A DNA stretch of 64,000 bases from Macrostomum lignano (lineage: Eukaryota), in the NCBI GenBank assembly GCA_002269645.1, contig NIVC01000139.1:62001-126000 (forward strand), given 5' to 3'. The notes under the pieces were generated by a model. That model ran no database searches and was not told where the DNA came from. It was given only the letters and a program-made list of their open reading frames with translations. The translations under genes were made by a program, and so were the position numbers. Positions 4,359 through 53,689 of this stretch are shown here, piece after piece. Every line of letters starts with the position of its first letter. The first letter of the stretch is position 1.

Positions 4359-6013
4359 TCTTTTCAACTTCGGATTCGTCAAATGTGAGTTCAAATAGTT
4401 GAATAGCTTTAGTTATATAGATTCGTCAGCGTATGCAAAACTATATAGTGCTCAAGGGGAAGAGAATGAGTGCCTATGGTATATTTTTAGAGAAAGTGAC
4501 TTCGAATTCGTCTAAGTAAGTGAAATTCATCAGTGCAAACTGCGTGTACTGTCAAAAATGAAAGCACAAAAGCAACAGAACAAACAGAACAGGAAAGCAG
4601 ACTTTAAAATCGCAAAAGGACTTTATCAGTAACTAAATTCAGTCAATCCAAAATGTCTGCGTGGGCCAGACGGCGCGGTCCGTAACGAAGTGTGAATTTA
4701 TGCCATTTTCGGCATTTCTCCTCCGTGATCGCAACCATTGCAGCTTCCACTTCTCGACTGAAAATGCGAAGACGCCGGTTCTGCAGGGTCTCACCTGCTG
4801 CTACAGCCGCCTGACGATCCTGAACTTCAAAGACAACTTGAGGGTCAGTCATGCGCTGTTTCAGGGCCACCTTCATGCAAGAAATTGCCATTTCAGTGGC
4901 GTTCAAGAAAGGCGAAAAAGGTGGCAAGAACTGAAGCCTCTGGTCAGGACGCTCGAAATTCACAACTCCGTGTGCTCTGGCATTGTCAGCAAGTGCCGTG
5001 AATTCATCATCAACAAGAGTCCCGACTTCAATCATAAACTCATGAAACCTCTCTGCTGTAAAGCCACCCACAAAGATGTGGTGGTGGACCAGTCCCAACT
5101 GCGGGCTAACAGCGAGCGCTACCGTCAGATTCTGCCCACGCTGCGCATTAGCAATCATTACTGCGCGATCGCCAAAATCCGCCCATCCTTTAGTTCGTGC
5201 CATCCACAGGTTGCACCCACACTCGTCTACGTAGATTAAATTCCTTACAAGCAGGCCGGTCTCAAGCATCCAGGTCATGTGTAGAAATCTAGCCTTTTTT
5301 GTCACGCCACTGTTCCAATCTCCATGAACTCGTCGTACATCCTTCAATGTAACGCACAAAGTCCCGTCAAGCCGACGACTGATTGTCTGCGTTGTCACAG
5401 CAGGAGCAGCAGGAAAATCTGCAACAAGCTTTTGCTGCATTTCTTTGAGGGTCACAGTCGGCTTCTCTTCTACATACCTCGTCAACGCCCCGAGCATCTC
5501 CTCAGAAAACTTCGGTCTCACTGCACCTCCACGCGCATTAAGAACAATCCTACCCTCATTAACATATCTCCCGATGATGTCACTAGCAGTTGTCCTCTTG
5601 ATATCCAGTTCAATTGCGAGTTGTCTCCAGTCTCGTCCTTGTTGAAAACATCTCACGAGTCTAGAGCGATCCACAGACGAAATTCTCATGTAGGGCATCT
5701 CTGACAGCAATCAAAGCATGAAATGAAGATTTCAAGAAATGGGGCTACTTTTCCACAGACGAACTTCACTCACTTTCTTACTTAAATTTACCATAGACAC
5801 TTTCTTTTCTAACCATGGACAAAGCAAACACTTTTTCTGATCAGGCTGTATTTGCACTGACGAATTTCACTTATGCTCGTACTTAGACGAATTCGAAGTC
5901 ACATTCTCTAAAAATTTACCATAGACACTCATTCTCTTCCCCTTGAGCGCTATATAGTTTTGCATACGCTGACGAATTTGAACTCACTTTTGACGAATCC
6001 GAAGTTGAAAAGG
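4359..6013 (-). mobile_element. Near-full-length IS630-Tc1-type DNA transposon
   Basis: About 170-bp TIRs (cttttcaacttcggattcgtcaa ... ttgacgaatccgaagttgaaaag), TA-flanked, enclosing transposase ORF 4643-5710. Confidence 0.88.
4643..5710 (-). CDS. IS630-Tc1 family DDE transposase, 355 aa
   Basis: N-terminal HTH, then IYVDECG (D1), ADNARAH (D2) and FLPPFSPFLNATE (E). Confidence 0.85.
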   Translation of the reverse strand: MLSEMPYMRISSVDRSRLVRCFQQGRDWRQLAIELDIKRTTASDIIGRYVNEGRIVLNARGGAVRPKFSEEMLGALTRYVEEKPTVTLKEMQQKLVADFPAAPAVTTQTISRRLDGTLCVTLKDVRRVHGDWNSGVTKKARFLHMTWMLETGLLVRNLIYVDECGCNLWMARTKGWADFGDRAVMIANAQRGQNLTVALAVSPQLGLVHHHIFVGGFTAERFHEFMIEVGTLVDDEFTALADNARAHGVVNFERPDQRLQFLPPFSPFLNATEMAISCMKVALKQRMTDPQVVFEVQDRQAAVAAGETLQNRRLRIFSREVEAAMVAITEEKCRKWHKFTLRYGPRRLAHADILD

Positions 6014-6015
6014 TA

Positions 6016-7597
6016 TATAATATAGTATTGGTTTTTTCATGCTAAGTGAGACATTTTTCAAGCAATCTGAGACTGAATAGCAAAAACACTATTGTCTATG
6101 GCCACCCCTCGCTGCAGCCCAGCTTTTTGGGCGCGCTTTGCAAGTAAAGTGAGACATTTTTTCAAGCTAAGTGAGAACCATATTGAAAAAAGGGGTGGTT
6201 TTACGAAATTACAAAATGATGTACTGTCGGAAACTATATATTTAGAAAAGGATACGCAGGAACACAACAAAACAAGCGGTACAAAAATTGTTGATAATGT
6301 TATAAGCGTTCAAATAAAGGGTTGCATGTTGATACACTGAGCAAACTTTCGAGTGCAGTGGAGCTCCCAGCCTGCGATCTTGTGCGGAGTAATGACATGC
6401 AGCGATTCTCTTCCAAGCCGATCCATCAGCATGTATCGCCAATCATCTCGTGTCATGCCTGGTGGGCAACCGTTTTCCTCAGCCACGATTGCGGGCTCTA
6501 CAAGGCGACGCTTAATCTCACTCTTAAGAGCGCTGTGCGCCATCTCCACGGGATTCAAAAACGGCGAGTACGCCGGTAAGATTTGCAGACGAATGAGATC
6601 CTCAAACTGCTCAGGTATCTCAATCCCTTGGTGAAAATTTGGACCATCGAAAATGAGAATAACTCGTCTGCCAGGAGCATCGGCCTGTATGATGTTAGCC
6701 AGTTCCAAAATAAACTGCTGAAATCTCTCTCGTGTCTGACCACCTCGCTGCAGCGTACAGTGGACAAGACCCAGTTCAGATGACACTGCTAAGCACATCG
6801 TCATGTTGGGACCCCTCTGCGTTACCACCGTTCGTCGCACAGGCTGGCCAACTCTTGCTCGACCCTGCGTCCTTCTCGTCCATAGATTGTAGCCAGTCTC
6901 ATCGATAAACACAGCCAGGTCATTCACAGCCAGTCCCGTCATCATCATAGCATAGTCGCGCCTCGCTTGTATCACATCCTGTGTATTCGCAGCAAGCCTC
7001 ACGTCGGCATCCTTGGTGGCGACTTTCAGTGAGATAAGCATGGAGTTCATCGCTCTAGCAATGGTGGATTCAAAGATAGCCGGCTTTTGTGGCAACTCCA
7101 AAGTCAGTTTTCTGTGCACATCCGTCAGAGTAACATAGGGATTTTGCTCAACTATCTGCTCAACGGCGTTCCGCATTTCAGCATCCATTTTTGTTGACCC
7201 CGGCTTGCGGCCACCGCGTTGCAACGCATGGAATTCACCAGTAGCTGCGTAGCGACTCCATATCCGATTCTGGATATGGAGCCGTGATAGGCCGTCTTCT
7301 TGTTCAGATTAAGGATTTTGGACGCAGTCGAAATTGAGTAATCATCTTCGACGGAATTGACCAGGCGCTCTCTATCCTCGTTGCTTGTTAGACGCAGTTG
7401 ATTTGCCGTAGCCCAGCCTTTGTTTTCAAAATGGTTCTCACTTAGCTTGAAAAAAATGTCTCACTTTGCTTGCAAGGCGATCCCAAAAAGCTGGGCTGCA
7501 GCGAGAGGTGGCCATAGACAATAGTGTTTTTGCTATTCAGTCTCAGATTGCTTAAAAAATGTCTCACTTCGCATGCAAAAACCAATATATGTTATTA
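6016..7597 (-). mobile_element. IS630-Tc1-type DNA transposon with frameshifted N-terminus
   Basis: About 160-bp TIRs (about 6025-6190 vs about 7425-7590). ORF 6310-7224 has VFIDETGYNLW, IFDGPNFH and ILPAYSPFLNPVE. The HTH upstream (SNEDRERLVNS...) is displaced by a 20-nt insertion at 7266-7285. Ends are approximate. Confidence 0.85.
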
Positions 7598-27393: not shown

Positions 27394-28719
27394 TCAGAAT
27401 GCAAAGTAAGAGGGCAGTTCAGCAGCTGGAAATAGAGTTCTGCGCGACTCCGCTCTCAGAAGGTCTACCAGGAAGCAGAGTTTCCCTGCCAGACCCTCAA
27501 AAAGCGATAAAGGCCGATCGGGGGTTCGACCAGGGAAGTTCAGCATGAACTGCGCAAATGCCGCAGCCCTGTGCAGATGTCGGGGATCGCCGGTGGCGCT
27601 GTGCAGTCGCAGAAACACGTAGCCGTTGCCCGAAATACCATGGCAGAGGCCGTCGCCTTTGTGCAGAAGTCCGCGGTGCCACACCACATCTGCGCACTGC
27701 AGCGCGGCAGGCAGGTCATCGATGCAGAGAAACATTAGGGCAAAACCAGGAGCTCCATGGCACCAGTGGACCAGGCGGTCTCTGTCGCTTCCCATTGAAG
27801 ATGGATAGTTAAGTGACTTGAACTGTTGCTGGCGAAGAAAGTCCACAGTTACGTCGAGCCTGCGCCTGGCATTAGAGAGCTCAACTTCAGACAGACCCAG
27901 ACTGGGTAGAATCCGAGCCAGAACGGACACAATTCCGCTAAGTCCATGAGCCGCACCGAAGTAGACAGAATCGTGCCACTCAAAGAGCAGACCATCGCCC
28001 CGGCCAATTCGTTGCTTCCAAAGTTCGGCTCCGTCCGCCAGGGTGCGCAAAGCAACCAAACGCGCCGCGGCACGGAGGTCTCGACGCGCATCCTGTGAAA
28101 GGTCCGCCAGCTCGCTGGCAACAAAGGCCAGCGCAAATAGGTACCCAGACCTGCCGTATAGCAGCTCGTTGGGAGGTCCGTCAGCAGCAGCGGCTGTCTG
28201 CAAGCTGAGTAGTCTCTCAAGAGAGCGACAGGCGAGGTCGCGGTCACCATGTTTCCAGTGCAACACAGCAGTGAGAGAGAGGACGCCAGAGTCTCCACAC
28301 AGAAAGCTGATTCGGCGGCAGTTAATCTGGCTGTAAAGTTCTTTCATTATATTAAGAGCGTTGCTAAGCAGGTGTCCGGAGTCAGGAAGAAGTCCCGAGC
28401 CAGCCAGGTGCCAGAAAAGGTATGCAATACCAGCCTTGCCTGTGTAAATCGACCTGTCTGTCGTAGGCATTGCCGTAAGATCTGGCGTTGCTCGAGACAG
28501 AAGGTGAACCAAAGCCTGATGTAGCCGCGCCCGAAAATCATCAGAAATTCTCCAGCAGTCATCATTTGAACGCTCTAAGAACTTTAAGTCCGATCCAGAA
28601 ATACCAAAATCAGAAAATTCGTTCGCAAAGTGCCGACCATCATTTAAATCGTAGGTAGTGACGACTTCCTTCCTTTCCTCCGAATTCGAGGACTTGCGCT
28701 GACGCTTGGCTGTCGCCAT
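27394..28719 (-). CDS. LANCL2: LanC-like protein (LANCL2-like), intronless, 441 aa
   Basis: YTGKAGIA, ELLYGRSGYL, YFGAAHGLSGI, VHWCHGAPG, GLCHGISGNGY and PDRPLSLFEGLAG. The Zn-ligand Cys/Cys/His residues are present. Confidence 0.9.
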   Translation of the reverse strand: MATAKRQRKSSNSEERKEVVTTYDLNDGRHFANEFSDFGISGSDLKFLERSNDDCWRISDDFRARLHQALVHLLSRATPDLTAMPTTDRSIYTGKAGIAYLFWHLAGSGLLPDSGHLLSNALNIMKELYSQINCRRISFLCGDSGVLSLTAVLHWKHGDRDLACRSLERLLSLQTAAAADGPPNELLYGRSGYLFALAFVASELADLSQDARRDLRAAARLVALRTLADGAELWKQRIGRGDGLLFEWHDSVYFGAAHGLSGIVSVLARILPSLGLSEVELSNARRRLDVTVDFLRQQQFKSLNYPSSMGSDRDRLVHWCHGAPGFALMFLCIDDLPAALQCADVVWHRGLLHKGDGLCHGISGNGYVFLRLHSATGDPRHLHRAAAFAQFMLNFPGRTPDRPLSLFEGLAGKLCFLVDLLRAESRRTLFPAAELPSYFAF

Positions 28720-28948
28720 GGATATTGCTTTTATAGTAGCAACTTGACGTCAGCATAAACCCAAGGAGGCTATATTATTGTAACATTGTACCGAACACAA
28801 AAGCCGAAACACAATACAAATAATGCGAGTTCTATTAAATGAGAATGTGACTGCAATATTTACTTGATAGATTTTTTATTCTGCTTGACTAAGCATTCGT
28901 CTGCTTTCATAGTTACTACTCCTTCATAGTTACTACTCCTTAGAACTA

Positions 28949-34352: not shown

Positions 34353-34554
34353 AAATTTCATAGACCCATCACTACGCGTTAATGTTATCAACTTTTGTTT
34401 TAATTTCTTTGACTAGATTATTGACTTTTTACATTTCACTACATCTGCCATAATAAACTCGTTAAAATGCATTCCACATGCGCATTAGTAGTAAAACGCT
34501 TGTCACTGTGCTCAGAATACATAAAGCAAAAAATAAAAACAGATAATGACGTAC

Positions 34555-36253
34555 CATCGCGAAGACAGCCAATTCGGTAAAGGGTGGGCATGCGGATGAC
34601 GAAGGCGAAGATGTCGTCAATGAAGGTGTTGAGTGCCTTGTAGGTGAGCATACGCCAAGGCAGGTGGGCTACGGACTTCATCTTGTAATTTATAAACAGC
34701 TGTGGCGTCATCATGATGAATCCGAACGTGAGCAGAAATCCATACAGCATGCTGAGCACCCAAGAGTACCAGCTCTTATGCTCCTGGTATAGCAGGGAAT
34801 AAACCGCGTACATCCCCAATAGGGGGAACAGCAGCCAGCTGAGGTAGCGGAAGGCCATCTGGTCGTATTTTTTTGTTTGCGATTCAGTATAGGTGGACTT
34901 CTCTCGCATGTGCACCCGCGGAATCAGACCCAGCAGCTTGGCGGTCCAGTCCACCTGTACATCTACTACTTTCTTGATCTTCCACAGCTCGATCAGCAGG
35001 CCGACAAAGACCGATACCCGCACAACAAAGTTGGTCTCATTATCCATCACGTACAGCAGAACCACAACGGACTGAAACACACTGAAAAAGACGCTGCGTA
35101 CGCTGAGACCCTCCAGCGACTGTCGGCTGCGCCAGAACTGGATGTCATTTTTAAAAGCCAGAAACTCAAACACAGAGTGCACAAGGCTCACCACCACAGT
35201 TAGGGCAAGTAGGTAGGGATTGGTCTCGACCAGAGTTCTCTTCAACGTGTCTTGCTCTTCATCAGATTCTTGGAATGTATCCTCGCCAAGAAAAGCCCCG
35301 TACCACTTATTGCGCATAGACTGGGCTGCATAAAGCTGCCAGCGAAAGAGAGACAATGGTTGAAATGTCACCGTTAGGTTCAGAAGCGGCGTTGTGTCAT
35401 TCACTGGCATGTAATCAGAGTTTAAATTCCAGTAATCGTTATAGTACAGAATAGGATAGTACTCGTTGGTTGGAGGATGGAATTGCACATACTCATCAAG
35501 GGGAGGCGGCAGAGATCCGGGGGTCCACGGTGTGTGATCATCAACGAGGCTGATGGTGAGGTTTGGGTGCCAGTGAGTACTGGGCGGAAGGTGTGTGGTA
35601 CCACCTGCCAGTCCTTCCTTGTCGAGTGGACCTTCGGTGCTTCCCGTAATAAGGTTTTGGGTGTTAGACACCCGCCTCCGCTTGTACTTGGTAAGCATTC
35701 GGCCGCTGTGCATTGTGTAGCGCTTGTCGTGATAACGGCTGCTCGGATCGGGCGAGTTGCCTGGTCGCACCACAAAGGTGTGAATGTACAGACTGCCGTT
35801 TTTCATGATAGTCTCGGGCACCTTGATCTTTCCGTGCTTGTAGTACACCCCGTCCCGATTCTCGCCGCTTTCCCAGTCGCCGTACACTAGGCCCGGCTGG
35901 TGCCAGAACAGATCTGAGGCCTCGTTAAACCGAGTGAAGTTCTGCTGCTCGTTGACGAAGATCCACAGGTCCAGCTTGCTGTTCTTTGGGAAAATGTTTT
36001 GGCAGGGCACCCGGAAGCTGCTGCCGGCCGAAGCTGGGGCGGATGGATCGCCAGGTGCAGTCTGGGGTTGTTGGCCACGCCGGAACAAGCTGCTGATGAA
36101 GTAGATAATGAGCATGCGTACAATGAACCCTTTGACCATGGCCCAACCGTTAGGCCGTTGCTGCTGCTCCCCACCCTGTTGAGCGTCGCCAGCGGCGGCT
36201 GCTGGTGCAGCGGCCTCACCAGCCACTGGAGCAATTGCTGCTGCATCTGCCAT
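34555..36253 (-). CDS. CLPTM1: CLPTM1 main exon (gene about 635 aa)
   Basis: NGSLYIH, HWHPNLTI, YYPILYYNDYW, ETNPYLL, FEFLAFKNDIQFW, LINYKMKSVAHLPWRMLTYKALNTFIDD. Start MADAAA at 36253; donor G|gtacgt at 34554. Confidence 0.93.
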
Positions 36254-37224
36254 TTGTGCTTTCAGGAGTGAGGTAAATTTATTAGTTGCAGTTAAAATTT
36301 GGCCCTCGCTGCAACATAAGAGGCATGCTTCACAGTAATCCAAAAGGCAGTTTATCTATGTTTTTAAATTAAATTCTACCTAGGCTTTAAGGCTTGGTGA
36401 TTTTTGTTGCAATTGTCCATGGTTATAATTTAAATAATTGGATTCACAAAAAGTTACAATATTAACTACTTATATCTAATCTAATATCCAATCTATCTAG
36501 TCTAGCCTACTTTTCTCAATTTCGATTCTTTAGTATGTAAATTATGTATCTTCTCTTGTTTATTATTACTGTAATTTATCATCATTAACAATTAAAAACA
36601 GCTTATTCTTATTCAATTTTCAGCTCACTATGTTTATGTTTATTCAATATTTATCATGATTCATTCTTCTTGCATAATATAGCTATTCTATTACAATATA
36701 AAGTTGTTATATCATATATAGTATAGCTAAAGCTAAAGCTAACAGTCAATTAACACAATTTTTCTTTATTTTTTTAAATGAATTAAATAACAATAGCTAT
36801 TTATATATATAATTATTTATATATTAATATTAGTATTACTCAGGCCAATTGCCATTGCCCAATTCATTGTTATTACTATTATTAAATTCAAAATTTTATA
36901 TTTATATACATTTATATAGCATATAGCATAAGCATATAACATAGCATCAGCTTTTACTTTTGACTTACAACTTATGAAAATCTGTCACTGGTGACATCTA
37001 CTAGTATCATCTGCAAGATGGCTTCACTTCAACCAAAGCAGCAAAAGCTAGACTAATTCTTGATTTCATAGTCATAGAGAATGCCACAATGCTAGGACTC
37101 GTCTCTGTCTATTTCAACTGATGATGCTATTGCTGCTACAATGGCAACCCATACATGCCCAACATCCATCCAACTCATCCAAACTGGACAGGTGAAATGG
37201 CCACTGGCCAAAGTAAGTCGCAAA

Positions 37225-39225: not shown

Positions 39226-41759
39226 ACATTTATAGTACAATTGATTACTTACATCATTAAATCATTCAGTAAAATGCATTAATATAGAACATAACCACAA
39301 AGGTAGCAACAAATCAGAATGCAAGAGACAAGTGCTCAGTGCATTGTGGATGTGGCAAATTTTTAGAAACCATGATGTGGCAATGATAGTCAGCTATTTA
39401 TTATTAGGGTATAAAAAGTCTAATTCACTCAAAGAAATTTATAAAACTTTTTCTTGATTCTACAAATTTAACTCTATTCTACAAAGTTTGAGCAGTTGTT
39501 TTTAATTGATCACATACCTACCTACCCACATATCTATGGATAGACCATTTTTAGTATATAGACTAAACTTTTTTTTTAGAGGCAAGGGGGTTGTGTGCAC
39601 CCTGGCGCACTTTAAGCAACATAGGCACACAACCGGCGAGAGGCATTACTGCCCATTCTGCCGACTCCCCTGAGCAGGCATACAAGCGCGCGGATAGGCC
39701 TACGTTATGCAGGCACACACTCACACAGGAGTGTACAGCGGCCCTAACTTTATCAATTGTTAGGCATGTACACTTCACTGCGCCTTGGGGGGTTGGCTCT
39801 CAAGGCCATTAATTGCACAAGCGAGCCAAGCCGAAATTCCAATTCAGCCCCAAATTAATGTGGCTGCACTTGGAATCGAGCCTGGGTTGCGGCACACTAG
39901 AGCAGCTGCGCTACCGCTGGGCTATGGCCCCCCTTAGACTAAACTTTAATGTTATAACTATTTTAGGCAAATTTTATATGCCAAAACAAAATATGAAAAC
40001 ACAATAAAAATATTGTAAGTTAGCCGCTTAGCCCTATAACTATTATATATTACTGCATGTTTTGTAAGCCCTAGGCTGAGCAAACAATTTACAAACAAAA
40101 GTTAATTATTAAATATAATTATATAGATAAAAGATAGGCCTACTAATATCTGAATAAGGCCTATTATTTCAGTTTATTTGGTTCATTCTAATTTTCTAAT
40201 TCTCTAGTCTAGATAAAGCTCTAAAAAGTGCATGCATGCTATACTTCTTTGAAGACACAGCAACAAAGCCAAACGTGCCAGCTTGCCCTAACTAAGCACG
40301 ATTTTTTTTTACTTTTCAAGGATCCATTCGCCTTTCCTAATGATGATCGATCTAACTCGATTCTAAAAAACAAAGCTAGTCATTGTACACTGTACGTATG
40401 AAACATTCGCCGACACTTATTCAGACACTTCTACAGACACTTTATTTTCTGTCGTACGGTTAGGAACAAGCATTAAATTTGTCTAGGACACTTCCTAATT
40501 CATATTTAATGAAATAAAGCAGTCCATGCATAGTTTTAATTTTGCAATTTTGTTTTTGTGCACTCGTTCCAGACTTTCAAATTATGGCTTTTATCGCGTA
40601 GTGTGCGTGCATGCATCGTGTACAACGATTAGCTGCAGCGTGCTAAATAGTTCAATTAGGTATTAAAAGCGTACAAGGTATTTGTACAATAGTATTTGTA
40701 CATTTTAGTTGAAGTTAAAAGTTCAAGCTTTTAGTGAATCATTGGAAAATAAAACTATCCGTTTTAAATCGTGCAACATATTGTTTTGTCTCGGACATTT
40801 GTGACACTGTCACTTAGGGTTGCAAGGTTTTTTAAAAGAGAAACTGTTGCTTTTCCAATGCTGAAGTATTTGTGTTGTATGGATCAGGGTTTTTCGTCAA
40901 AATTTGGATGCATGTATACATCTAAACATATAAAAATGATCAAGGTTGAAGATTACCCTATGGTATAACTGTTTTCTCCATTTTACTATTTCAAAGTGCC
41001 CACGTGAAGTTAGATTTAGCATGCCAGCCTTAAAAAATAAAAAAATCTACATAGTGTAGAATTGTATACTCTTTTATTTAAGACTATATTATATTCCCAA
41101 TATATTTGCTTAGATAAATCGAAAAGTATTTACTTTACTTGAAAAAAATAATGTTCACTACAAATATTTCAATGTAGAAACCAGGAAACATAAACCTATC
41201 AAGTGTTATATAGAAATGAAGGATAAAGATATGGATAGAATACAATAAAGCCATTGTGGGCATTAAATATAAAACAAAAGAATCACTTAAGGCAAAATTT
41301 GAAAAAAGTGAATTTTTGGCATGCTCCAAGAAAAGAGGCTTATAATTTGAAATATTTTTGCTTTTGTTTGACAAAAAATATGTATAGATTTATACTTTTG
41401 GGCAAGGTTTATTTTCTCTTAAAATTCTAATTGTAAATTTGCCAGTAAGCTTAAAAATTGTTGTAAGTTGAAGCTCAAATAAAATTAGTCTTAACTCCAA
41501 TCTGACTTTCCAAAGTAAATCCCTAAATTATTTGTTACAATTGCTTTAAAAACTTGCCATTTCATTTATTCATTAATCAAAATTTTGTTCTAGAAACTGA
41601 TACCTATAGAAGGTTTTTAGTTTTTAAGAAATCTAGTAACTAGTGTCAGAGAAATATGTTTATGTAGGTTTTATATATATATATCAACCTTATATATAAA
41701 AAAGGTTGCACACTGAGATTTAAATACAGCTTCTAACATGTGTGTCCAGAGGTGAGATT

Positions 41760-44625
41760 GTGGCCAACTGCACACCAATAGCATACCAACTCTATACCAA
41801 ATCCATACTGACATGCCAACTGTATACCAACTGTATACAAACACCATATCAACTCCATACCAACTGCATACCAACCCCATACCAATATGCCAACTGCATA
41901 CCAACTCCATACCAATATGCCAACTGCATACCAACTCCATACCAACATGCCAACTGCATACCAACTACATACCAACATGCCAACTGCATACCAACACCAT
42001 ACCAACTCCATACCAACTGCATACCAACTGCATACCAACTCCATACCAACTACATACCAACATGCCAACTGCATACCAACACCATACCAACTCCATACCA
42101 ACTGCATACCAACTCCATACCAACTATACTCCAACATGCCAACTGTATACCTACACCATACCAACTGTATGCCAACTGCATACCAACTCCATACCAACAT
42201 GCCAACTGCATACCAACTCCATACCAACATGCCAACTGCATACCAACTACATACCAACATGCCAACTGCATACCAACACCATACCAACTCCATACCAACT
42301 GCATACCAACTGCATACCAACTCTATACCAACTACATACCAACATGCCAACTGCATACCAACACCATACCAACTCCATACCAACTGCATACCAACTCCAT
42401 ACCAACTATACTCCAACATGCCAACTGTATACCTACACCATACCAACTGTATGCCAACTGCATACCAACTCCATACCAACATGCCAACTGCATACCAACT
42501 CCATACCAACTGCATACCAACTCCATACCAACATGCCAACTGCATACCAACTCCATACCAACTGCATACCAACTACATACCAACATGCCAACTGCATACC
42601 AACACCATACCAACTCCATACCAACTACATACCAACATGCCAACTGCATACCAACACCATACCAACTGCATACCAACTCCATACCAACATGCCAACTGCA
42701 TACCAACTCCATACCAACATGCCAACTGCATACCAACTACATACCAACATGCCAACTGCATACCAACACCATACCAACTCCATACCAACTGCATACCAAC
42801 TGCATACCAACTCCATACCAACTACATACCAACATGCCAACTGCATACCAACACCATACCAACTCCATACCAACTGCATACCAACTCCATACCAACTATA
42901 CTCCAACATGCCAACTGTATACCTACACCATACCAACTGTATGCCAACTGCATACCAACTCCATACCAACATGCCAACTGCATACCAACTCCATACCAAC
43001 ATGCCAACTGCATACCAACTCCATACCAACATGCCAACTGCATACCAACTACATACCAACTGCATACCAACTACATACCAACATGCCAACTGCATACCAA
43101 CACCATACCAACTCCATACCAACTACATACCAACATGCCAACTGCATACCAACACCATACCAACTGCATACCAACTCCATACCAACATGCCAACTGCATA
43201 CCAACTACATACCAACATGCCAACTGCATACCAACACCATACCAACTCCATACCAACTGCATACCAACTCCATACCAACTATACTCCAACATGCCAACTG
43301 TATACCTACACCATACCAACTGTATGCCAACTGCATACCAACTCCATACCAACATGCCAACTGCATACCAACTCCATACCAACTGCATACCAACTCCATA
43401 CCAACATGCCAACTGCATACCAACTCCATACCAACTGCATACCAACTACATACCAACATGCCAACTGCATACCAACACCATACCAACTCCATACCAACTA
43501 CATACCAACATGCCAACTGCATACCAACACCATACCAACTGCATACCAACTCCATACCAACATGCCAACTGCATACCAACTACATACCAACATGCCAACT
43601 GCATACCAACACCATACCAACTCCATACCAACTGCATACCAACTGCATACCAACTCCATACCAACTACATACCAACATGCCAACTGCATACCAACACCAT
43701 ACCAACTCCATACCAACTGCATACCAACTCCATACCAACTATACTCCAACATGCCAACTGTATACCTACACCATACCAACTGTATGCCAACTGCATACCA
43801 ACTCCATACCAACATGCCAACTGCATACCAACTCCATACCAACATGCCAACTGCATACCAACTCCATACCAACATGCCAACTGCATACCAACTACATACC
43901 AACTGCATACCAACTACATACCAACATGCCAACTGCATACCAACACCATACCAACTCCATACCAACTACATACCAACATGCCAACTGCATACCAACACCA
44001 TACCAACTGCATACCAACTCCATACCAACATGCCAACTGCATACCAACTACATACCAACATGCCAACTGCATACCAACACCATACCAACTCCATACCAAC
44101 TGCATACCAACTCCATACCAACTACATACCAACATGCCAACTGCATACCAACACCATACCAACTCCATACCAACTGCATACCAACTCCATACCAACTATA
44201 CTCCAACATGCCAACTGTATACCTACACCATACCAACTGTATGCCAACTGCATACCAACTCCATACCAACATGCCAACTGCATACCAACTACATACCAAC
44301 ATGCCAACTGCATACCAACACCATACCAACTCCATACCAACTGCATACCAACTGCATACCAACTCCATACCAACTACATACCAACATGCCAACTGCATAC
44401 CAACACCATACCAACTCCATACCAACTGCATACCAACTGCATACCAACTCCATACCAACTATATTCCAACATGCCAACTGTATACCTACACCATACCAAC
44501 TGTATGCCAACTGCATACCAACTCCATACCAACATGCCAACTGCATACCAACTCCATACCAACTCCATACCAACATGCCAACTGCATACCAACTCCATAC
44601 CAACATACTAACTACATACCAACAT
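41760..44625 (+). repeat. CCAAC-core minisatellite array in the left TIR (about 2.9 kb)
   Basis: Variant 8-11-bp units: CCAACTGCATA, CCAACTCCATA, CCAACTACATA, CCAACACCATA, CCAACATG. Confidence 0.95.
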
Positions 44626-44701
44626 GACAACTTATATTATGCCACACTAAACGAAAACATGGCAAATTCATACCATTGTTTCATGTTTCAGGCTTCTTTG
44701 C

Positions 44702-47179
44702 ATGGCAGCGAAGAAAAGTGTGAACGACACTTCTGAAGCCATTAGCGGTGACCATTCAGGTGCTGCTGGTGCACAAGTTTTTTCTGCTGGAGGTTTTTTT
44801 GTGGAATCATGCATATCAACTAATCTCTTCGTGAATCACTTTGATACAAGAACTTGTAAACTTAAGCCTTCTTGGTTGGATCAAGTCATTTATCCACTGT
44901 TAAGACAGCATGGTGAGTATTGTCAGTTCTCAGTTAATAAGGTTAGACTGCGTGCATTTAAGCGCCATAGGAAGGACTGCAGTTTTCTTTGGATGCGCCT
45001 AGTCTGTGCCGAAGGCTCTGGTTGCAGTATGGCATTCGTCGTCACCTTAAACAAGGCGCCGACTGATGGGCAGTCCTCTACACTGACGCTACGAAGAATC
45101 TCAGAGCACTCGGGGCATGATGTTCCATCAAGTTGTTCCTCTTATCGCTATCTGTTGCAACGAGGTTCACAAGAGTGCCGTAACTTTGTTTTATCTCAGG
45201 CCACCAACCCTGCTGCCAAGCCAACGCAGATCTATGTGAAAGCAATCGAGCTGTTTGGTAGCGAAGCATGCTCTCTATCTGCTGTCCGTACAACTGTTAG
45301 TCGGACAAAAGCTGCCGACGACAAGTCTCCAGACGACATAAGAGATTTAAGACTCCAAATGAAAGACTGGAAGTTGACTATAAACGAGGATGGAGTCATT
45401 AGCGGCTATATCCAAAAGATTGACGTTGCACCAGTTAGTGTGATTCTCCATACCTCCATGCAGTTGGATTTGCTTCGCGACGTGCTGAAAGGCAATCAGC
45501 TTGCTCCTCTCCACTTAGACGCCACCGGCGGAATTGTGCGACAGACCCAGAACGTGCCGAGCACTGTACTTCTGTGCAGTGCTGTTGTTGCAACCCCGGA
45601 TATAAAGAGAACAGCTGTATCAGAAAGCATCATGGAGGTCACGCGCTCGGAAAATGTGTCCAGTTGGCTAATGCATTTTTTAGCAGATTTCGCTCGTCAC
45701 TGCAACATAGGACTGTGGGAACTACCCAAGAAAGGTCCGCAAATCTACGTGTCTGACTTTAGCTGGGTTTTCATTCATGGTATTCTCCGAGCCGCATGCA
45801 CGACCTGTGTTACAGACTACCTGCGTGTACAGTACAATCGACTTCGGAGTGCTGATCTGAAGCCACCTGAATCTCCTGTTGTGTTTATCTGTAGCTCGCA
45901 TTTGCTGCGCGCTGTTGCCAGGACTTTGAAGTCACCAGATAAAATCGATAAGGTTACTTATCGCGAGTTCATGCTCTCTTTTGCACTATTAGTGACGTCG
46001 AAAACTTTGCGTTGCGCCCAAGCTGTTTGGAAGGCAATGGTCGAGGTGTTTACCTCCAGGCGGGTAAATCCTGCCACTTTGAAGGCTTTACAAATTCTAC
46101 ATGGTAGGTTCGACTTCAGTTCGTTGGAGATTCCTGATGAAAACCAAGTGGCTGAAGATTCTGCTAATGTCTCAAATGCAGTGCAAGAAGACGTCGCATT
46201 GGCTGAATTGGAGACTGGACTACGAGCCTCATCACCTTTTGCGAAGTACTTCAACGATTTGACAAGCGAAGTGACAGCAAGCGATGGCAATGGCGTGCTG
46301 AACAATCTTTTCTACCCTCAGGCTGTTCAGGTTGTATTGCGAAAGTGGATGCCACTGTTTCCTCTTTGGAGTGTGGCAGTGTTTGGAGGAAATCGTAGCG
46401 CACACGTGACCAACGCCGCTGTTGAATCATGGTTCAGCTGGTGCAAAAGCGAAGCACTGCCTTCTCCAAGTTCTCGGCTCAGGTTACCAAGATTTGTCCG
46501 TGCGCAACTAACAACCGTAAAACTGCAACTGAAGCGGTTGCAGCACGAGCAACATCCAATTCGCCCCCCAAAGCGTGCTAGAGGACGCAAATGTGGCTTT
46601 GATGCTCCGTTAAACCCACCTGGAGATCCCTGGAAAAGGTCAGGAGCCTCAAAAAGACGAAGAACCAGCTTCATTCAATCGGCATTATCAATTCCGCCAG
46701 CCGTTGCACCCACGACCTGTACTCTAGCTGCGCCTGCTGCAAGTGGGTCTCGCTTGGGCAGCCAGCCCGTCATTGTCCAGGTTCGGCCTGCTATTGCACC
46801 CACGACCTGTACTCTAGCTGCGCCTGCTGCAAGTGGGTCTCGCTCGGGCAGCCAGCCCGTCATTGTCCAGGTTCGGCCTGCTATTGCACCCACGACCTGT
46901 ACTCTAGCTGCGCCTGCTGCAAGTGGGTCTCGCTGGGGCAGCCAGCCCGTCATTGTCCAGGTTCGGCCTGCTATTGCACCCACGACCTGTACACTAGCTG
47001 CGCCTGCTGCAAGTGGGTCTCGCTGGGGCAGCCAGCCCGTCATTGTCCAGGTTCGGCCTGCTATTGCACCCACGACCTGTACACTAGCTGCGCCTGCTGC
47101 AAGTGGGTCTCGCTCGGGCATTTCACCTGCACCAACAGCACAGAATACCACCTGTCACAGCCTACCAGATGAGCAAATT
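44702..47179 (+). CDS. MULE/NOF-like DDE transposase (first exon of a putative transposase-USP fusion)
   Basis: LHLDATGG (D1), YVSDFSW (D2), FICSSH (CxxH) and AVESWF (E), uninterrupted. It ends in 30-aa repeats and a phase-0 donor ATT|gtgagt at 47180; the unspliced ORF stops at 47308. Confidence 0.85.
46702..47119 (+). repeat. 90-bp coding tandem repeat (about 4.6 x 30 aa, IAPTTCTLAAPAASGSRxGSQPVIVQVRPA)
   Basis: ttgcacccacg recurs at 46704, 46794, 46884, 46974 and 47064. Confidence 0.92.
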
Positions 47180-47715
47180 GTGAGTGATGAAATTGCATTT
47201 TTTCAGTTTAGAAATACCTTCAGTCAACCCTTGTATTGGTTTACGTATTGTGTATGCGCCGTACACTCACTCCGCCACAATTTGCGTCTCCCACTAGATC
47301 TGTCGTAGTAATGTATGTGCCATGTCTCAGCAACTTGTGGGTAAGGTGCAACCTTATCAATCAACTCTCTTTGTAGGCCTCCTCCGTCTCGACTGGCACA
47401 GGTATTTATATTGCACAATCCAACATGTTCCGTATGATGCACGTCTCTGTTACGTGATTGTTCTCTGATTAGAGATCTAAAGTTTATGATTCTATCATTT
47501 TTTTGCTTTTCGTGTCACCGATTATGCCCTTTTAAGTTTTACTAATTTCCATGAATTAGCATTCAACATGTTGCTTTCCATAAGTATTTGTACTTTTAAG
47601 TTTCGTTTCTTTTGCTTACGTCGAGGCGCCATTTTTTGTTGTTAAATGGATGTGACTGGGCTGTTCACTGGGACATTTTGATGGTAAATTCGTTCCTAAC
47701 CGCCAATTTTATTAG

Positions 47716-48796
47716 GACGCGCCGACACTGCAGTGTCATTTCCTGCACTATCGCCACGGTCGCCAGAGGGGCTACCGAATCCGACGGGCACGTATTGTGC
47801 TTTCAATGCCGCCAGTCAATGCTTGGTTGCAACATTAACGAGCGCACTATCGTGTGATGCAGATTCACCACTTGCATTGTTCCTTAACTGCCTAATGACA
47901 GGCAAAGACGTTCTGTTGCTGCATTCAGCCGCGTTTCAGTGGTGCAGTAAAGCATTTCATATGGATCCTATGGCACAAAACTGTGCCTTAGAGTTTCTGA
48001 CCGGAATGCTGTTTCTTTCTGAGCTCAAACTGCGATTCAGCTGCGAGGTAAGGGTGAACGGTTTATTAAGTTTATGACTATTTAAATGCGTTTTAGTAAA
48101 GTGATTTAAGCCTGCATCCTGAATCTAAATTTATTTGTAAGTTACCTTCGAAGACAGTATATACTTTGCTGGAAGGCAAAGAATACCTTTCAATCGCGCT
48201 TCCACTGTGTGTTGGTCTTCACAGTTGCACCATGAGTACTGTTCCTATCCATCTTTTTTATTTCGTAGATTTCTACAACTTTGAGTTGTTCCGCCTGTTT
48301 CAAAGTGACACGACTGCTACCTAGAGACACGGCAACTATTCTACGTTTATCAATTCCTGATCACGACGACTCGCTTGATTTCCCGGCACTCATTAGACAG
48401 TCACTGTTTTCTACTCAAGACCACACCGACATCCGTTGTCCGACTTGCGACGTCGGGGGGTGCAGCTATGCACAAACACTTGCAACAACGTCGGAGCACA
48501 TATGCATGGGAATTAGCCGAGTCTCTGTCAAGCGCAGAAAGGGACAAACTGTACTATTCGAGAAGAACACTAAAGTTGTACCCATCGAGATGAAGCTTAC
48601 TTTGAGTGGCAGAAGCTACAAGCTTCGTGCAGCCATCGTTCACATTGGTAGTCGCGTGAATAGTGGTCACTATATTGCATACGTATTCTGTGGCCGCACT
48701 AGCTACTGTGTCAGTGATTTGACTGTACGAAAAGTATCTTTGTCAGCGGCATTCAATGACGTGAAGCGAAACTGCTGCGCTCTTTTTTACGGCTAA
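47716..48796 (+). CDS. Ubiquitin-specific protease (C19/USP)-like domain, exons 47716-48047 and 48269-48796
   Basis: Cys box GLPNPTGTYCAFNAASQCL, QNCALEFL, Zn-ribbon CSAC...CPTCDVGGC, His box YKLRAAIVHIGSRVNSGHYIAYV, then VSDLTV and CALFY. Phase-0 intron GAG|gtaagg...tttcgtag|ATT. Confidence 0.8.
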
Positions 48797-49638
48797 CGTG
48801 CTGGTGATCTCCGTGTTATTAACATAATGTGGACGGTTTACTTATTTTCTTGAGTTTATTCGTGTTTGTAATGGTCTCATGCCGTTGAAAGTATAAATTC
48901 ATAACTGATGATCGTGCTGTGTAATGTATTTATAACAAAAACTTTTAACTGTGTTGAAAAGGTCTACATATATACATGTACGGATTTGCATTTTATAGTT
49001 TACCGCCATTTTAATTCTCTATTTTTCTGTATGCGCTAAAAGCTGGGACTAAACGCCGTTAGTAAACCGTTTAGACAACGTGAGTTCTAAAACTTATAGT
49101 GTCAACTATATACTCTTTTCTTGCAGCTAAATACTCTCCATTTGAGTATAATCGTAATTGTTTTTGGCCTGTGAAACCTGTACACCTGTCACTTATCACT
49201 TAGGCCAATAAATGTCACAAAAGAAAAAATTGTTCAACGAAATACGTGCCATGAAACATTCCTTTGCTTTATTTATCCGAAAGAATTTATTTCAACACAA
49301 GGACTGACAACTAATACGGGTAAAGGAAATGAAACTGTTCAAATATAAGTATAAACTACAATTAATCGTTCAAGGAAGTATAGATTAAAAACCACATAAG
49401 ATACTTGTCTCATAGTTACTACTACGCTGAAGTCATTCAACTACATACTTTGTTGCAATGAAAATTGTTGCATGGTACAATAGATAAGCCAATAAGCTAT
49501 ACGAACGGTATGACTTTGTTTAATGCTCGAATACCAGCGTTCTTATTTTCGTGCAAAAGAAGCTGGCAAACTCGCATAACGAACTCGCAAACTGAACAGA
49601 CACGCATCCGATATTCCGTCACGCATCATCCTAGTCTG

Positions 49639-50778
49639 TTACTCATGCCTCGTTCGCGAGCGCAATGACATCGCTGGTTGGACCGACCTTAAAGATCTCT
49701 GGGGCCTCTGCGATCTCCGACGCATTGGTTTTAGTGGTCCAAGAGCGGGACACTCGTACTGTTGGGACTGCCGCTGTTCATCCAGCTCGAGCTGCCGCTG
49801 CTCCTCTGGCAGTGCGAGTTGCCGTTGGCCGTCCTGTATCTGCGGATGCCGCTGTTCATCCAGCTCGAGCTGCCGCGGCTCCTCCTGCAATGCGAGTTGC
49901 CGTTGGCCGTCCTGTATCTGCGGATGCCGCTGTTCATCCAGCTCGAGCTGCCGCGGCTCCTCCTGCAGTGCGAGTTGCCGTTGGCCGTCCTGTATCTGCG
50001 GATGCCGCTGTTCATCCAGCTCGAGCTGCCGCGGCTCCTCCTGCAGTGCGAGTTGCCGTTGGCCGTCCTGTATCTGCGGATGCCGCTGTTCATCCAGCTC
50101 GAGCTGCCGCGGCTCCTGCAGTGCGAGTTGCCGTTGGCCGTCCTGTATCTGCGGATGCCGCTGTTCATCCAGCTCGAGATGCCGCTGCTCGTCTTGCAGC
50201 GCGTGCTGCCGCTGCTCCTCATCAGTTGGGCGTGATCGCCGCTGCATGAAACGCCGACGGTGCACAGTCGATTGTAGCTGACTGAAGCCGCGCGAGACAA
50301 CGAGCAGAGAACGAAGAACAGACACATCACATGAAGAAATAAGGAGCCGAAAGCTCTGCAAAACTTGCTTCCGCAGTCGCTTTGAACTTTGAAAATGGTG
50401 ACCCGGAACCTCTCGACGTAGGACAACTGACTGCGTCAGATGTGGCTTAGTTACACGCTGCAGCCAAGCAATGCCATTACCACGGTGGTCTTTGTTTCCA
50501 CAACCATATACACCGTGCAAAAATGCAACCTTGCTAGGATCGGTTATTAATTGGACAACAGACACTCGATCACGTCCGCACCTACGAAATCCGTCTCGCA
50601 CACGGATATTAGAATGATTAAATGAACGTGTGCAAACGCAAAGCCTCTGGCAAACCGACTGAATCGATAGTTCATCGCTGTTGTTGAACGTCACAATGAC
50701 AGGAAGAGAAGGGCATGGTAGGACCGCACCTACACAAGGCAGAACAGCATCTGGTGGGCCTTGTAATAACTGGTCCAT
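49639..50778 (-). CDS. Second MULE ORF, convergent with the transposase, with Gln/Glu-rich 26-aa repeats; function unknown
   Basis: 379-aa ORF beginning just inside the right TIR, in a mudrB-like position. The repeat region is open in several frames, so the coding frame is uncertain. Confidence 0.45.
   Translation of the reverse strand: MDQLLQGPPDAVLPCVGAVLPCPSLPVIVTFNNSDELSIQSVCQRLCVCTRSFNHSNIRVRDGFRRCGRDRVSVVQLITDPSKVAFLHGVYGCGNKDHRGNGIAWLQRVTKPHLTQSVVLRREVPGHHFQSSKRLRKQVLQSFRLLISSCDVSVLRSLLVVSRGFSQLQSTVHRRRFMQRRSRPTDEEQRQHALQDEQRHLELDEQRHPQIQDGQRQLALQEPRQLELDEQRHPQIQDGQRQLALQEEPRQLELDEQRHPQIQDGQRQLALQEEPRQLELDEQRHPQIQDGQRQLALQEEPRQLELDEQRHPQIQDGQRQLALPEEQRQLELDEQRQSQQYECPALGPLKPMRRRSQRPQRSLRSVQPAMSLRSRTRHE
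49770..50220. repeat. 78-bp tandem repeat (about 5.7 copies)
   Basis: gccgctgttcatccagctcgag recurs at 49770, 49848, 49926, 50004, 50082 and 50157. Confidence 0.92.
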
Positions 50779-50904
50779 GCATATGGAAGAGTGCGATTTT
50801 AGTCATCAAAAGAGTCAGGAAAGATGGCAACATGGCAGAAGTATCCCAAGAGTTGTACAAAAAGAGAACCTAAAAGTTCCTACGAGTCTCGCAATTTAAC
50901 ATTC

Positions 50905-51930
50905 TTGGTATGGAGTTGGCATGCAGTTGGCATGTTGGTATGGAGTTGGTATGCAGTTGGTATGCAGTTGGTATGCAGTTGGCATACAGTTGGTATGGAG
51001 TTGGTATGCAGTTGGTATGCAGTTGGTATGCAGTTGGTATGCAGTTGGCATACAGTTGGTATGGTGTTGGTATACAGTTGGCATGTTGGAATATAGTTGG
51101 TATGGAGTTGGTATGCAGTTGGTATGCAGTTGGTATGCAGTTGGTATGCAGTTGGTATGGAGTTGGTATGCAGTTGGCATGTTGGTATGGAGTTGGTATG
51201 TAGTTGGTATGCAGTTGGTATGGTGTTGGTATGCAGTTGGCATGTTTGTATGGAGTTGGTATGGAGTTGGTATGCAGTTGGTATGGAGTTGGTATGCAGT
51301 TGGCATGTTGGTATGGAGTTGGTATGCAGTTGGCATGCAGTTGGTATGGTGTTGGTATGCAGTTGGCATGTTGGTATGTAGTTGGTATGCAGTTGGTATG
51401 GAGTTGGTATGGTGTTGGTATGCAGTTGGCATGTTGGTATGTAGTTGGTATGCAGTTGGCATGTTGGTATGGAGTTGGTATGCAGTTGGCATGTTGGTAT
51501 GGAGTTGGTATGCAGTTGGCATACAGTTGGTATGGTGTAGGTATACAGTTGGCATGTTGGAGTATAGTTGGTATGGAGTTGGTATGCAGTTGGTATGGAG
51601 TTGGTATGGTGTTGGTATGCAGTTGGCATGTTGGTATGTAGTTGGTATGGAGTTGGTATGCAGTTGGTATGCAGTTGGTATGGAGTTGGTATGGTGTTGG
51701 TATGCAGTTGGCATGTTGGTATGTAGTTGGTATGCAGTTGGCATGTTGGTATGGAGTTGGTATGCAGTTGGCATATTGGTATGGAGTTGGTATGCAGTTG
51801 GCATATTGGTATGGGGTTGGTATGCAGTTGGTATGGAGTTGATATGGTGTTTGTATACAGTTGGTATACAGTTGGCATGTCAGTATGGATTTGGTATAGA
51901 GTTGGTATGCTATTGGTGTGCAGTTGGCCA
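50905..51930 (-). repeat. Inverted CCAAC-core minisatellite array in the right TIR (about 1.0 kb)
   Basis: Reverse complement of the left array, but shorter. Confidence 0.95.
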
Positions 51931-53689
51931 CAATCTCACCTCTGGACACACATGTTAGAAGCTGTATTTAAATCTCAGTGTGCAACCTTTTTTATATATA
52001 AGGTTGATATATATATATAAAACCTACATAAACATATTTCTCTGACACTAGTTACTAGATTTCTTAAAAACTAAAAACCTTCTATAGGTATCAGTTTCTA
52101 GAACAAAATTTTGATTAATGAATAAATGAAATGGCAAGTTTTTAAAGCAATTGTAACAAATAATTTAGGGATTTACTTTGGAAAGTCAGATTGGAGTTAA
52201 GACTAATTTTATTTGAGCTTCAACTTACAACAATTTTTAAGCTTACTGGCAAATTTACAATTAGAATTTTAAGAGAAAATAAACCTTGCCCAAAAGTATA
52301 AATCTATACATATTTTTTGTCAAACAAAAGCAAAAATATTTCAAATTATAAGCCTCTTTTCTTGGAGCATGCCAAAAATTCACTTTTTTCAAATTTTGCC
52401 TTAAGTGATTCTTTTGTTTTATATTTAATGCCCACAATGGCTTTATTGTATTCTATCCATATCTTTATCCTTCATTTCTATATAACACTTGATAGGTTTA
52501 TGTTTCCTGGTTTCTACATTGAAATATTTGTAGTGAACATTATTTTTTTCAAGTAAAGTAAATACTTTTCGATTTATCTAAGCAAATATATTGGGAATAT
52601 AATATAGTCTTAAATAAAAGAGTATACAATTCTACACTATGTAGATTTTTTTATTTTTTAAGGCTGGCATGCTAAATCTAACTTCACGTGGGCACTTTGA
52701 AATAGTAAAATGGAGAAAACAGTTATACCATAGGGTAATCTTCAACCTTGATCATTTTTATATGTTTAGATGTATACATGCATCCAAATTTTGACGAAAA
52801 ACCCTGATCCATACAACACAAATACTTCAGCATTGGAAAAGCAACAGTTTCTCTTTTAAAAAACCTTGCAACCCTAAGTGACAGTGTCACAAATGTCCGA
52901 GACAAAACAATATGTTGCACGATTTAAAACGGATAGTTTTATTTTCCAATGATTCACTAAAAGCTTGAACTTTTAACTTCAACTAAAATGTACAAATACT
53001 ATTGTACAAATACCTTGTACGCTTTTAATACCTAATTGAACTATTTAGCACGCTGCAGCTAATCGTTGTACACGATGCATGCACGCACACTACGCGATAA
53101 AAGCCATAATTTGAAAGTCTGGAACGAGTGCACAAAAACAAAATTGCAAAATTAAAACTATGCATGGACTGCTTTATTTCATTAAATATGAATTAGGAAG
53201 TGTCCTAGACAAATTTAATGCTTGTTCCTAACCGTACGACAGAAAATAAAGTGTCTGTAGAAGTGTCTGAATAAGTGTCGGCGAATGTTTCATACGTGTA
53301 CACTGTTCATGGAAAATGTAAACTTATGACGCATGTATGAATAAAAGAGTTTAACAAAGACTCTTTTTATACTATAAACAGAAGGCCTGTCTCTATATCA
53401 ATTTAGAAATGGTTCGTCGAATTTGGTCTATAAGATAGCTTTATTTTTGTTACAACTAAGGTATTTTTTTAACACCGGATGCACGGGTTCACAAAAAAAT
53501 TAATCTATCGCGTTTAAGAAGCACATTTTTTGTCCCTAGCAAGTCGCGACGAGCAGAATTAGTTTCCAGCCTTGAAAACTTTAGGAATTCCGTGTTTTAG
53601 CGTTTGCAGTAATTAACTTTGAACGTGCTACTAAATTTATTTGCAACGAGTCTATCAAGACAAGAGACCAAGTGCCAATTTACAAAAAC

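Follow-up and report, generated by a model that had tools for sequence, protein, structure and literature searches.

Within the 64,000-nt stretch of Macrostomum lignano DNA analysed here (contig NIVC01000139.1; the whole stretch is called the window), positions 40394-53297 represent a complete 12,904-bp Foldback-like transposon of the Mutator superfamily (Mutator-like elements, MULEs). The element encloses a feature which a first-pass annotation, made from the letters of the sequence, had placed at 44702-48796 and described as a Mutator transposase followed by a repeat linker and a ubiquitin-specific protease (USP, peptidase family C19). In our preferred reading, to which a probability of about 0.6 is assigned, the element is autonomous and has been active very recently, it encodes a DDE/CxxH transposase, a linker and a USP on two exons, and alternative splicing would join these parts to a transposase with a tethered deubiquitinase.

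The transposase and its superfamily

The 5' part of the feature is an open reading frame (ORF) with these properties:

44702..47308 (+): transposase ORF of 868 amino acids (aa), uninterrupted reading frame
D273 (45518), D352 (45755), C397xxH400 (45890-45901) and E575 (46424) (+): catalytic residues of the transposase, from alignments with relatives

An uninterrupted frame with a DDE/CxxH motif had already been recognised in the first-pass annotation, and both points were borne out. D273, D352, C397, H400 and E575 show little or no variation across relatives and thereby provide the DDE core together with the C/DxxH motif. In addition, residues 102-139 form a candidate C/C/H/H zinc finger (C-x5-C-x27-H-x2-H), and basic stretches resembling nuclear localisation signals are located at residues 622-657. 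Among the annotated proteins of M. lignano there is an identical one.

Pfam returned no match at all for the transposase ORF. The MULE model PF10551 gave nothing at E<=1, and the FLYWCH model was not matched. A phmmer search of the transposase against the PDB sequences found nothing either. Among 1.84 billion representative proteins, residues 1-700 have 634 matches at E<=0.001 and 204 at E<=1e-10; PF10551 matches two of 39 relatives, at ~0.0015 and thus below the cut-off. For a comparison of profiles, the M. lignano ORFs which pass PF10551 were taken as the MULE set. A profile of 111 sequences of the window family reached a probability of 94.7% against this set in hhalign (E 5.7e-8, 164 columns), and in the alignment both aspartates and the CxxH motif line up. 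The two Tc1/mariner transposases of the window served as controls and reached 0.2-0.3%; the profile controls for this placement cover Tc1/mariner only.

An AlphaFold model of the transposase, built on an alignment of 45 sequences, has a predicted local distance difference test score (pLDDT) of 83 and a predicted template modelling score (pTM) of 0.80. Its best fold match in the PDB is ISCth4 of the IS256 family (6xgx; E 5.8e-4), at about 9% identity and a TM-score of 0.27-0.35, and the hAT transposase Hermes ranks lower. The best match among the predicted viral structures of BFVD is a bracovirus protein (E 1e-10), which agrees with Phantom-type MULEs having reportedly been found in insect viruses. 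IS256 is the prokaryotic counterpart of the MULEs (PMC3169594). On these profile and model grounds the transposase ORF is accepted as a member of the Mutator superfamily which Pfam's own model does not reach. The earlier naming as a MULE transposase is thus upheld by hhalign, its controls and the fold match, with the Pfam MULE model remaining silent.

The KDZ/Zisupton superfamily was also considered, on account of 8-bp target site duplications (TSDs) and protease cargo, and was set aside in view of the homology to MULEs. No KDZ family is present among the 25 most-matched of 46 Pfam families in the relatives; a direct KDZ profile test was not made.

The USP domain

Downstream of the transposase two exons code for the protease:

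47716..48047 (+): USP exon 1 with the Cys box GLPNPTGTYCAFNAA, Asn codon at 47778, Cys codon at 47796
48269..48796 (+): USP exon 2 with zinc-ribbon CxxC pairs, the His box GHY (48668), the Asp in CVSD (48716) and the stop codon TAA at 48794-48796

The joined exons score 38.3 bits on the Pfam model UCH (PF00443; cut-off 23.9) and cover profile positions 71-254; sister copies reach 42.1 bits. No Peptidase_C48 domain was found by Pfam in the window element. The USP boxes named in the first-pass annotation (N..C, GHY and VSD) can be aligned to USPs of solved structure. Among the element USPs of the genome, those of the window and of the loci L019 and L021 are closest to each other, with 50-57% identity, and all three keep Asn22, Cys28, His245 and Asp261 of the domain. 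The same four catalytic residues are retained in four further lineages of 21-37% identity, which makes seven lineages with an overall range of 21-57%. A profile of the window, L019 and L021 USPs matches USP15, USP30, USP35, USP12/46 and USP36 in the PDB (best E 1.7e-5). In a weak domain match of its own, the Cys box GLPNPTGTYCAFNAA is aligned with GLSN-LGNTCFMNSA of USP15; the His box aligns to GGHY, and GHY as well as the S/N/D-D motif line up with USP15 and USP30.

USP exon 2 is collinear with paralogues of 50% identity, and the window copy retains this collinear frame. In L019 the USP exons are separated by an intron of the same position and phase. The USP genes of the host reach 100-239 bits on Pfam UCH in comparison to 38-42 bits for the element USPs. 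Because the catalytic set is kept at low identity, the intron is shared and the host USPs are remote, the element USPs appear to be old and diverged and not a recent capture. Judged from profiles and aligned residues, the two exons encode a domain of the USP/C19 type in which all catalytic residues are present, and which would be expected to act as a deubiquitinase.

Linkage of transposase and USP in the genome

USP-like loci were collected by a genome search, and ten of them were fetched and scanned in six frames with local profiles. The counts of copies and lineages given here and below are lower bounds, as the genome searches scored the best candidates only (764-Mb assembly). A transposase adjoins the USP at every examined locus, and it lies just upstream on the same strand in all but L058. 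Across seven element lineages and three types of transposase the USP has the same orientation, and in six lineages it is located directly 3' of the transposase. The loci are distributed as follows:

L019, L020: transposase of the window's clade, 22% identical
L021, L022, L056, L057, L059, L060: SWIM-bearing MULE type, with hhalign values of 95.6% to the Pfam MULEs and 76.6% to the window family
L058: Pfam-type MULE located 3' of the USP; USP exon 1 is in one ORF with a SWIM finger, which lies ahead of the Cys box

In L060 a single frame of 704 codons comprises the transposase (D..D..DWNH..E), a SWIM finger and the Cys box of the USP GLRNFGESCWFNAAIQ, and the following exon scores 42 bits on Pfam UCH. 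At the level of the reading frame L060 and L058 are thus direct transposase-USP fusions, in L058 of the SWIM finger with the Cys box.

The USPs do not follow the grouping of the transposases. The transposase of L019 groups with that of the window and the one of L021 does not, yet the USP of L019 is nearer to the USP of L021 (57%) than to that of the window (50%). Furthermore, L019 (2719-3363, +) and L021 (1155-2276, +) have an opposite-strand ORF in common (40% identity, E 2e-37). Since this kinship of USP and ORF conflicts with the transposase grouping, the USP, together with the ORF, seems to have moved as a module between transposase lineages. An ORF of the window element at 49639-50802 shows no similarity to the opposite-strand ORFs of L019 and L021. 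By the loci compared, the USP is a recurrent partner of MULEs and not a stray capture.

Relatives of the window transposase with other cargo are known from the same genome and from other organisms. In L015 (C2970, 799-6447, +) one frame of 1882 codons contains N-terminal low-complexity repeats of Ala, Gly, Ser and Asp, then a transposase of the window's clade, then Ulp1 (C48) and PHD. This transposase is 25% identical to that of the window, and with Ulp1 in place of a USP the locus is, within this genome, the counterpart of the window element. Peptidase_C48 was found in 10 of 39 long relatives from other organisms, PHD in 15, a YqaJ-type exonuclease domain in five and OTU in two. The statement in the first-pass annotation that MULEs and other DNA transposons carry Ulp1 (C48) or OTU proteases therefore applies to relatives at the very same position. 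Local HMM searches of the 150 best-matching transposase relatives of other organisms found no USP; one of the 39 long relatives has a sub-threshold Pfam UCH match (E 0.0056). A sister transposase family with 40% identity (L013/L014 on C1607 and C130) bears very long peptide-repeat tails (ECAATTEIG.., PKRRMAES..), and no protease domain is present within the stretch fetched for it.

Possible splice routes between transposase and USP

The region between the catalytic core and the USP contains the following features, in which a slash marks the boundary of an exon:

46704..47120 (+): 90-nt unit in 4.6 tandem copies, which code for the 30-aa Ala/Pro-rich linker
Exon ends 46742, 46832, 46922, 47012 and 47102 (+): in-repeat phase-1 donors CAA/GTGGGT, one per repeat
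47180..47715 (+): intron of the NCBI gene models, with the donor ATT/GTGAGT after 47179 and the acceptor TTATTAG/ before 47716
47298..47340 (+): 43-nt bridging exon of the first-pass annotation, with good splice signals on both sides; it includes the ATG at 47322

The 30-aa repeat linker was correctly seen in the first-pass annotation. USP exon 1 has no in-frame ATG 5' of the Cys box in the window element, and the same is true for L019, L021 and L056. Five routes to the USP exons can be considered:

Route a, 47179 to 47716: out of frame with a stop after 40 codons; all five NCBI models
Route b, in-repeat donor to 47716: in-frame product of up to 1086 aa; the UniProt entry A0A1I8HZW9 has this junction
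Route c, 47179 to 47298 and 47340 to 47716: in-frame product of 1126 aa; good splice signals as its sole support
Route d, start at ATG 47322 and 47340 to 47716: stand-alone USP of 292 aa; read from the sequence
Route e, 47179 to 47769: in frame; weak acceptor

Route c is the four-exon gene which had been proposed before. Its arithmetic is sound, as the exons add up to 3381 nt in frame with GT..AG at every junction, and the direct junction from 47179 to 47716 is indeed out of phase, as had been argued for inserting the 43-nt exon. However, this exon finds support neither in the gene models nor in the comparative data. The route is also not the single phase-consistent one, because all five in-repeat donors reach the acceptor at 47716 in frame without the 43-nt exon, and the available models follow other paths: those of NCBI join 47179 to 47716, and the UniProt model uses an in-repeat donor (..APAA/RRADTAVSF..), in frame. 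The earlier splice model is neither unique nor confirmed, and a fusion in the window family is rated as likely. Peptides spanning the predicted fusion product would include AAPAARRADTAVSF or DEQICRSNVCAMSQQLVGRADT.

Comparison with the other loci argues in the same direction. The top-ranked donor of the L019 transposase tail matches in phase the top-ranked acceptor 5' of the Cys box, and in L021 and L056 in-frame pairs exist among donors and acceptors which are tied for or near the top rank. These compatible pairs favour the fusion as the ancestral design. Furthermore, the Ala/Pro repeat linker is in the transposase frame in the window element and in the USP frame in L021, a switch which is expected if both belong to one polypeptide. 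Trans-splicing of a spliced leader at 47716 was considered as a source of the start codon for the USP and was rejected: the M. lignano spliced leader, which we take to end in ATG, would place this ATG out of the USP frame, in which no Met occurs until after the Cys box.

Ends, copies and mobility of the element

The element is delimited by the following features:

40385..40393: left copy of the TSD, 9 bp, GTACACTGT; a related empty locus has one copy
40394..42311 (+): left terminal inverted repeat (TIR), beginning with ACGTATGAAACATTCGCC, 1918 nt, perfect complement of 51380-53297
41764..44623 (+): left subterminal tandem array with the 11-nt unit CCAACTCCATA in a 63-nt higher order; Foldback-like terminus
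50905..51927 (-): right subterminal tandem array, inverted match to the left array
51380..53297 (-): right TIR, 1918 nt, pairs perfectly with 40394-42311
53298..53306: right copy of the TSD, 9 bp, GTACACTGT

The TSD GTACACTGT is a direct 9-bp repeat on both sides of the element. With perfect TIRs of 1918 nt and this duplication, the ends have the form known from Mutator elements (TIRs and TSDs of about 8-11 bp). A related locus found by genome search, C1280:262217-262726, is 89% identical over all 500 nt of the joined flanks. It contains a single GTACACTGT and no element, and thereby demonstrates insertion with target duplication.

At least 12 other contigs contain the terminal 120 nt in inverted pairs whose members are 7-13.5 kb apart (genome search), and seven of nine other full copies have clean 8-bp TSDs, all of them different. 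The full copies, at least 12 in number, are 98-100% identical, their chief difference being the number of 90-nt repeats, and their flanks differ. The element thus represents a young, multi-copy cut-and-paste family with Foldback-like ends which is probably still active. A look at further genomic copies had been recommended in the first-pass annotation; it yielded these many near-identical copies as well as the further USP-bearing lineages. Inverted pairs of about 400 bp, made up of the TIR's first ~90 nt at 91-93% identity, were observed at C459:237598-237995, with similar pairs on C867, C1237 and C255. They are probably miniature inverted-repeat transposable element (MITE) derivatives of the window family or of a sister family.

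Proposed function and alternative explanations

Lacking its own start codon, the USP occupies the C-terminal place at which relatives carry Ulp1 (C48), with or without PHD, or OTU. It is therefore interpreted as the tethered module of the family for the deconjugation of ubiquitin or ubiquitin-like proteins. The choice between alternative 5' splice sites would most likely determine which product is made. Splicing from donor 47179 to 47716 would give a transposase-only protein with a frameshifted tail of 40 aa, and splicing from an in-repeat donor to 47716 a transposase-linker-USP fusion of up to 1086 aa; the path through the 43-nt exon would be a less likely way to the same fusion. DNA binding by the transposase would bring the USP to the element, where the tethered USP could strip repressive or degradative ubiquitin from the transposase, the transpososome or the local chromatin, or stabilise the transposition complex. 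What the data show is the structure and mobility of the element, the homology to MULEs, a USP domain with conserved catalytic residues and its recurrent linkage to transposases, with single-ORF fusions in sister lineages; translation of the fusion in the window family, the activity of its USP, the substrate and the benefit to the element are inferred. Protection of the transposase and removal of H2Aub had been suggested as possible functions in the first-pass annotation. Such an anti-silencing or stabilising role follows the example of the Ulp1/OTU modules of the relatives and of the anti-silencing factors encoded by transposons, which are known (PMC12730594).

A further idea is put forward tentatively, and we consider it possible but doubtful. 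The 90-nt repeats, each with an in-frame donor, may form a tunable isoform switch in which the repeat number sets the ratio of the products, and the USP, in some lineages with the neighbouring ORF, may be a mobile module which is swapped between unrelated MULE lineages because a deubiquitinase tethered to chromatin would counter silencing or degradation by the host.

Several observations weigh against a spliced fusion with a working USP in the window family. All five NCBI models (Mlig004567.g1-g4 and Mlig024943.g1) join 47179 to 47716 and leave the USP out of frame. These five models carry just two repeat units, and the naming of Mlig004567.g1-g4 suggests that one assembled transcript was mapped to several loci. 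The UniProt entry with the in-frame junction, A0A1I8HZW9, may have been predicted ab initio, and the intron after 48047 is left in it. Annotated proteins with this USP amount to one UniProt fragment of 197 aa, and no long fusion was found among them. AlphaFold, given the USP sequence by itself, produced an unusable model (pLDDT 34), so the USP fold rests on sequence profiles. Deletions of 1 nt occur in USP exon 2 of several copies, including some among L002 and L006-L009 (one site is 48354, the other a run of six G at 48455); they may reflect decay or homopolymer and assembly errors of long reads. Finally, the ratio of nonsynonymous to synonymous substitutions in the transposase is about 1.2, the substitutions lying between the two subfamilies, and at this value between near-identical copies there is no sign of selection on the recent copies.

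From some of these points it could be concluded that the USP exons of the window family are a relic, which became 3' untranslated after the out-of-frame junction from 47179 to 47716, and that the fusion works in sister lineages only. All NCBI models do read USP exon 1 in another frame and stop there after 40 codons, and the frameshifting deletions and the lack of any sign of purifying selection on recent copies also speak for it. This explanation is nevertheless unlikely. In the window copy and in at least three others, both USP exons are open and all catalytic residues are present, an identity of about 50% to stop-free paralogues needs long-term constraint, five in-frame donors exist, and the indels are partly located in a homopolymer and may be errors of the assembly. 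A similarly low probability, higher by a trace, is given to the USP being a separate second protein of 292 aa, started at ATG 47322 and spliced from 47340 to 47716 and from 48047 to 48269. The ATG lies 14 nt beyond the stop codon of the transposase and is in the USP frame through a good donor, G/GTAAGG at 47340, for which there is no other explanation; moreover, Mutator elements can hold more than one gene, as MuDR does with mudrA and mudrB. Set against this, no gene model uses the start, and transposase and USP form one ORF in L060 and L058. Exon 1 of L019, L021 and L056 is likewise devoid of an ATG before the Cys box, with strong tail donors pairing in frame with strong acceptors, and the change of the Ala/Pro linker between the transposase frame here and the USP frame in L021 fits a single polypeptide.

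MULEs capture fragments of host genes (Pack-MULEs), and this established behaviour would allow the USP to be a chance fragment with no role for the element. Such fragments are lineage-specific, usually degenerate and close to a host gene, whereas the USP is a conserved domain remote from the host USPs (38-42 bits in comparison to 100-239 bits). Its same orientation in seven divergent lineages, its place directly 3' of the transposase in six, the catalytic set intact in all seven and the intron position common to lineages make a chance capture very improbable. Compared with these explanations, the fusion of transposase and tethered USP by alternative splicing is preferred.

Relation to known transposons

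The element resembles the Tm1/Phantom-type elements in its long composite inverted ends of short tandem repeats, its MULE-type DDE transposase and its MITE-like derivatives. Tm1 of root-knot nematodes (MULE/Phantom) has composite Foldback-like ends and duplications of 8-10 bp (PMC3169594). Unlike this type, the window element has no Pfam FLYWCH domain, only the C/C/H/H pattern at residues 102-139. In contrast to Tm1, its transposase is far larger and carries the repeat linker and the USP; the word 'protease' is never used in the Tm1 paper (PMC3169594). The fold nearest to the modelled catalytic core among solved structures is that of IS256/ISCth4 (PDB 6xgx), which is bacterial and has no protease module.

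A protease for ubiquitin-like proteins located C-terminal to the transposase is shared with the MULEs and other DNA transposons which bear Ulp1 or OTU. Plant KI-MULEs carry Ulp1, and Ginger DNA transposons reportedly are carriers of Ulp1 (C48) or OTU proteases. Such proteases are borne by many unrelated transposons, and to our knowledge their use to the element is not known. In contrast to these systems, the protease of the window element is a USP/C19, which is split by an intron and would be reached by splicing. The spread of the USP over at least three transposase types, together with the alternation of Ulp1 and USP, points to a common need for deconjugation at the site of transposition and not to chance capture.

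The first-pass annotation knew of no described USP/C19 cargo of MULEs. Literature searches found no report of a MULE carrying a USP either, but the UCH domain itself is listed for another class of transposons. In the HELIANO survey, UCH (PF00443) is given as stably carried at a conserved position in the Helitron-like HLE2 elements (PMC11417382). HLE2 and the window element are alike in keeping a UCH domain within a DNA transposon; HLE2, however, is a rolling-circle element with Rep/helicase and the window element a cut-and-paste one with a DDE transposase. A spliced transposase-USP fusion, as proposed here, is not described for HLE2 in the passages of PMC11417382 consulted. UCH cargo in transposons is thus already catalogued for Helitron-like elements, and the linkage of MULE and USP is the new part.

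For transposon biology, the interest lies in this linkage, in the exchange of modules between lineages and in the presence of Ulp1 and USP versions side by side. Related MULE transposases in one genome which carry either Ulp1 with PHD or USP at the same position offer a natural comparison. RNA interference and transgenesis are feasible in M. lignano. With near-identical and apparently active copies in a tractable animal, it becomes practical to ask whether the USP protects the transposase or acts on chromatin marks.

Neighbouring open reading frames and other features of the window

The element contains one further ORF, which converges with the transposase:

49639..50802 (-): second ORF of 387 aa, in which a 78-nt unit is tandemly repeated at 49769-50211; no Pfam family

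With a transposase and a convergent 387-aa ORF, the two-gene layout of the window element is like that of MuDR. The ORF is intact in five copies; its relatives are 35-47% identical, and one of them is located beside a USP-bearing MULE (C800).

An Rfam scan of the window gave no match. Outside the element, two adjacent ORFs of the Tc1/mariner type code for transposases with Pfam DDE_3 and helix-turn-helix (HTH) domains, and three single large exons belong to host genes:

4643-5710 (-) and 6310-7308 (-): Tc1/mariner-type transposase ORFs
1064-2560 (-): RPGRIP1-like C2-domain exon
27394-28749 (-): LanC-like exon
34439-36355 (-): CLPTM1 exon

The CLPTM1 exon lies about 4 kb from the transposon.

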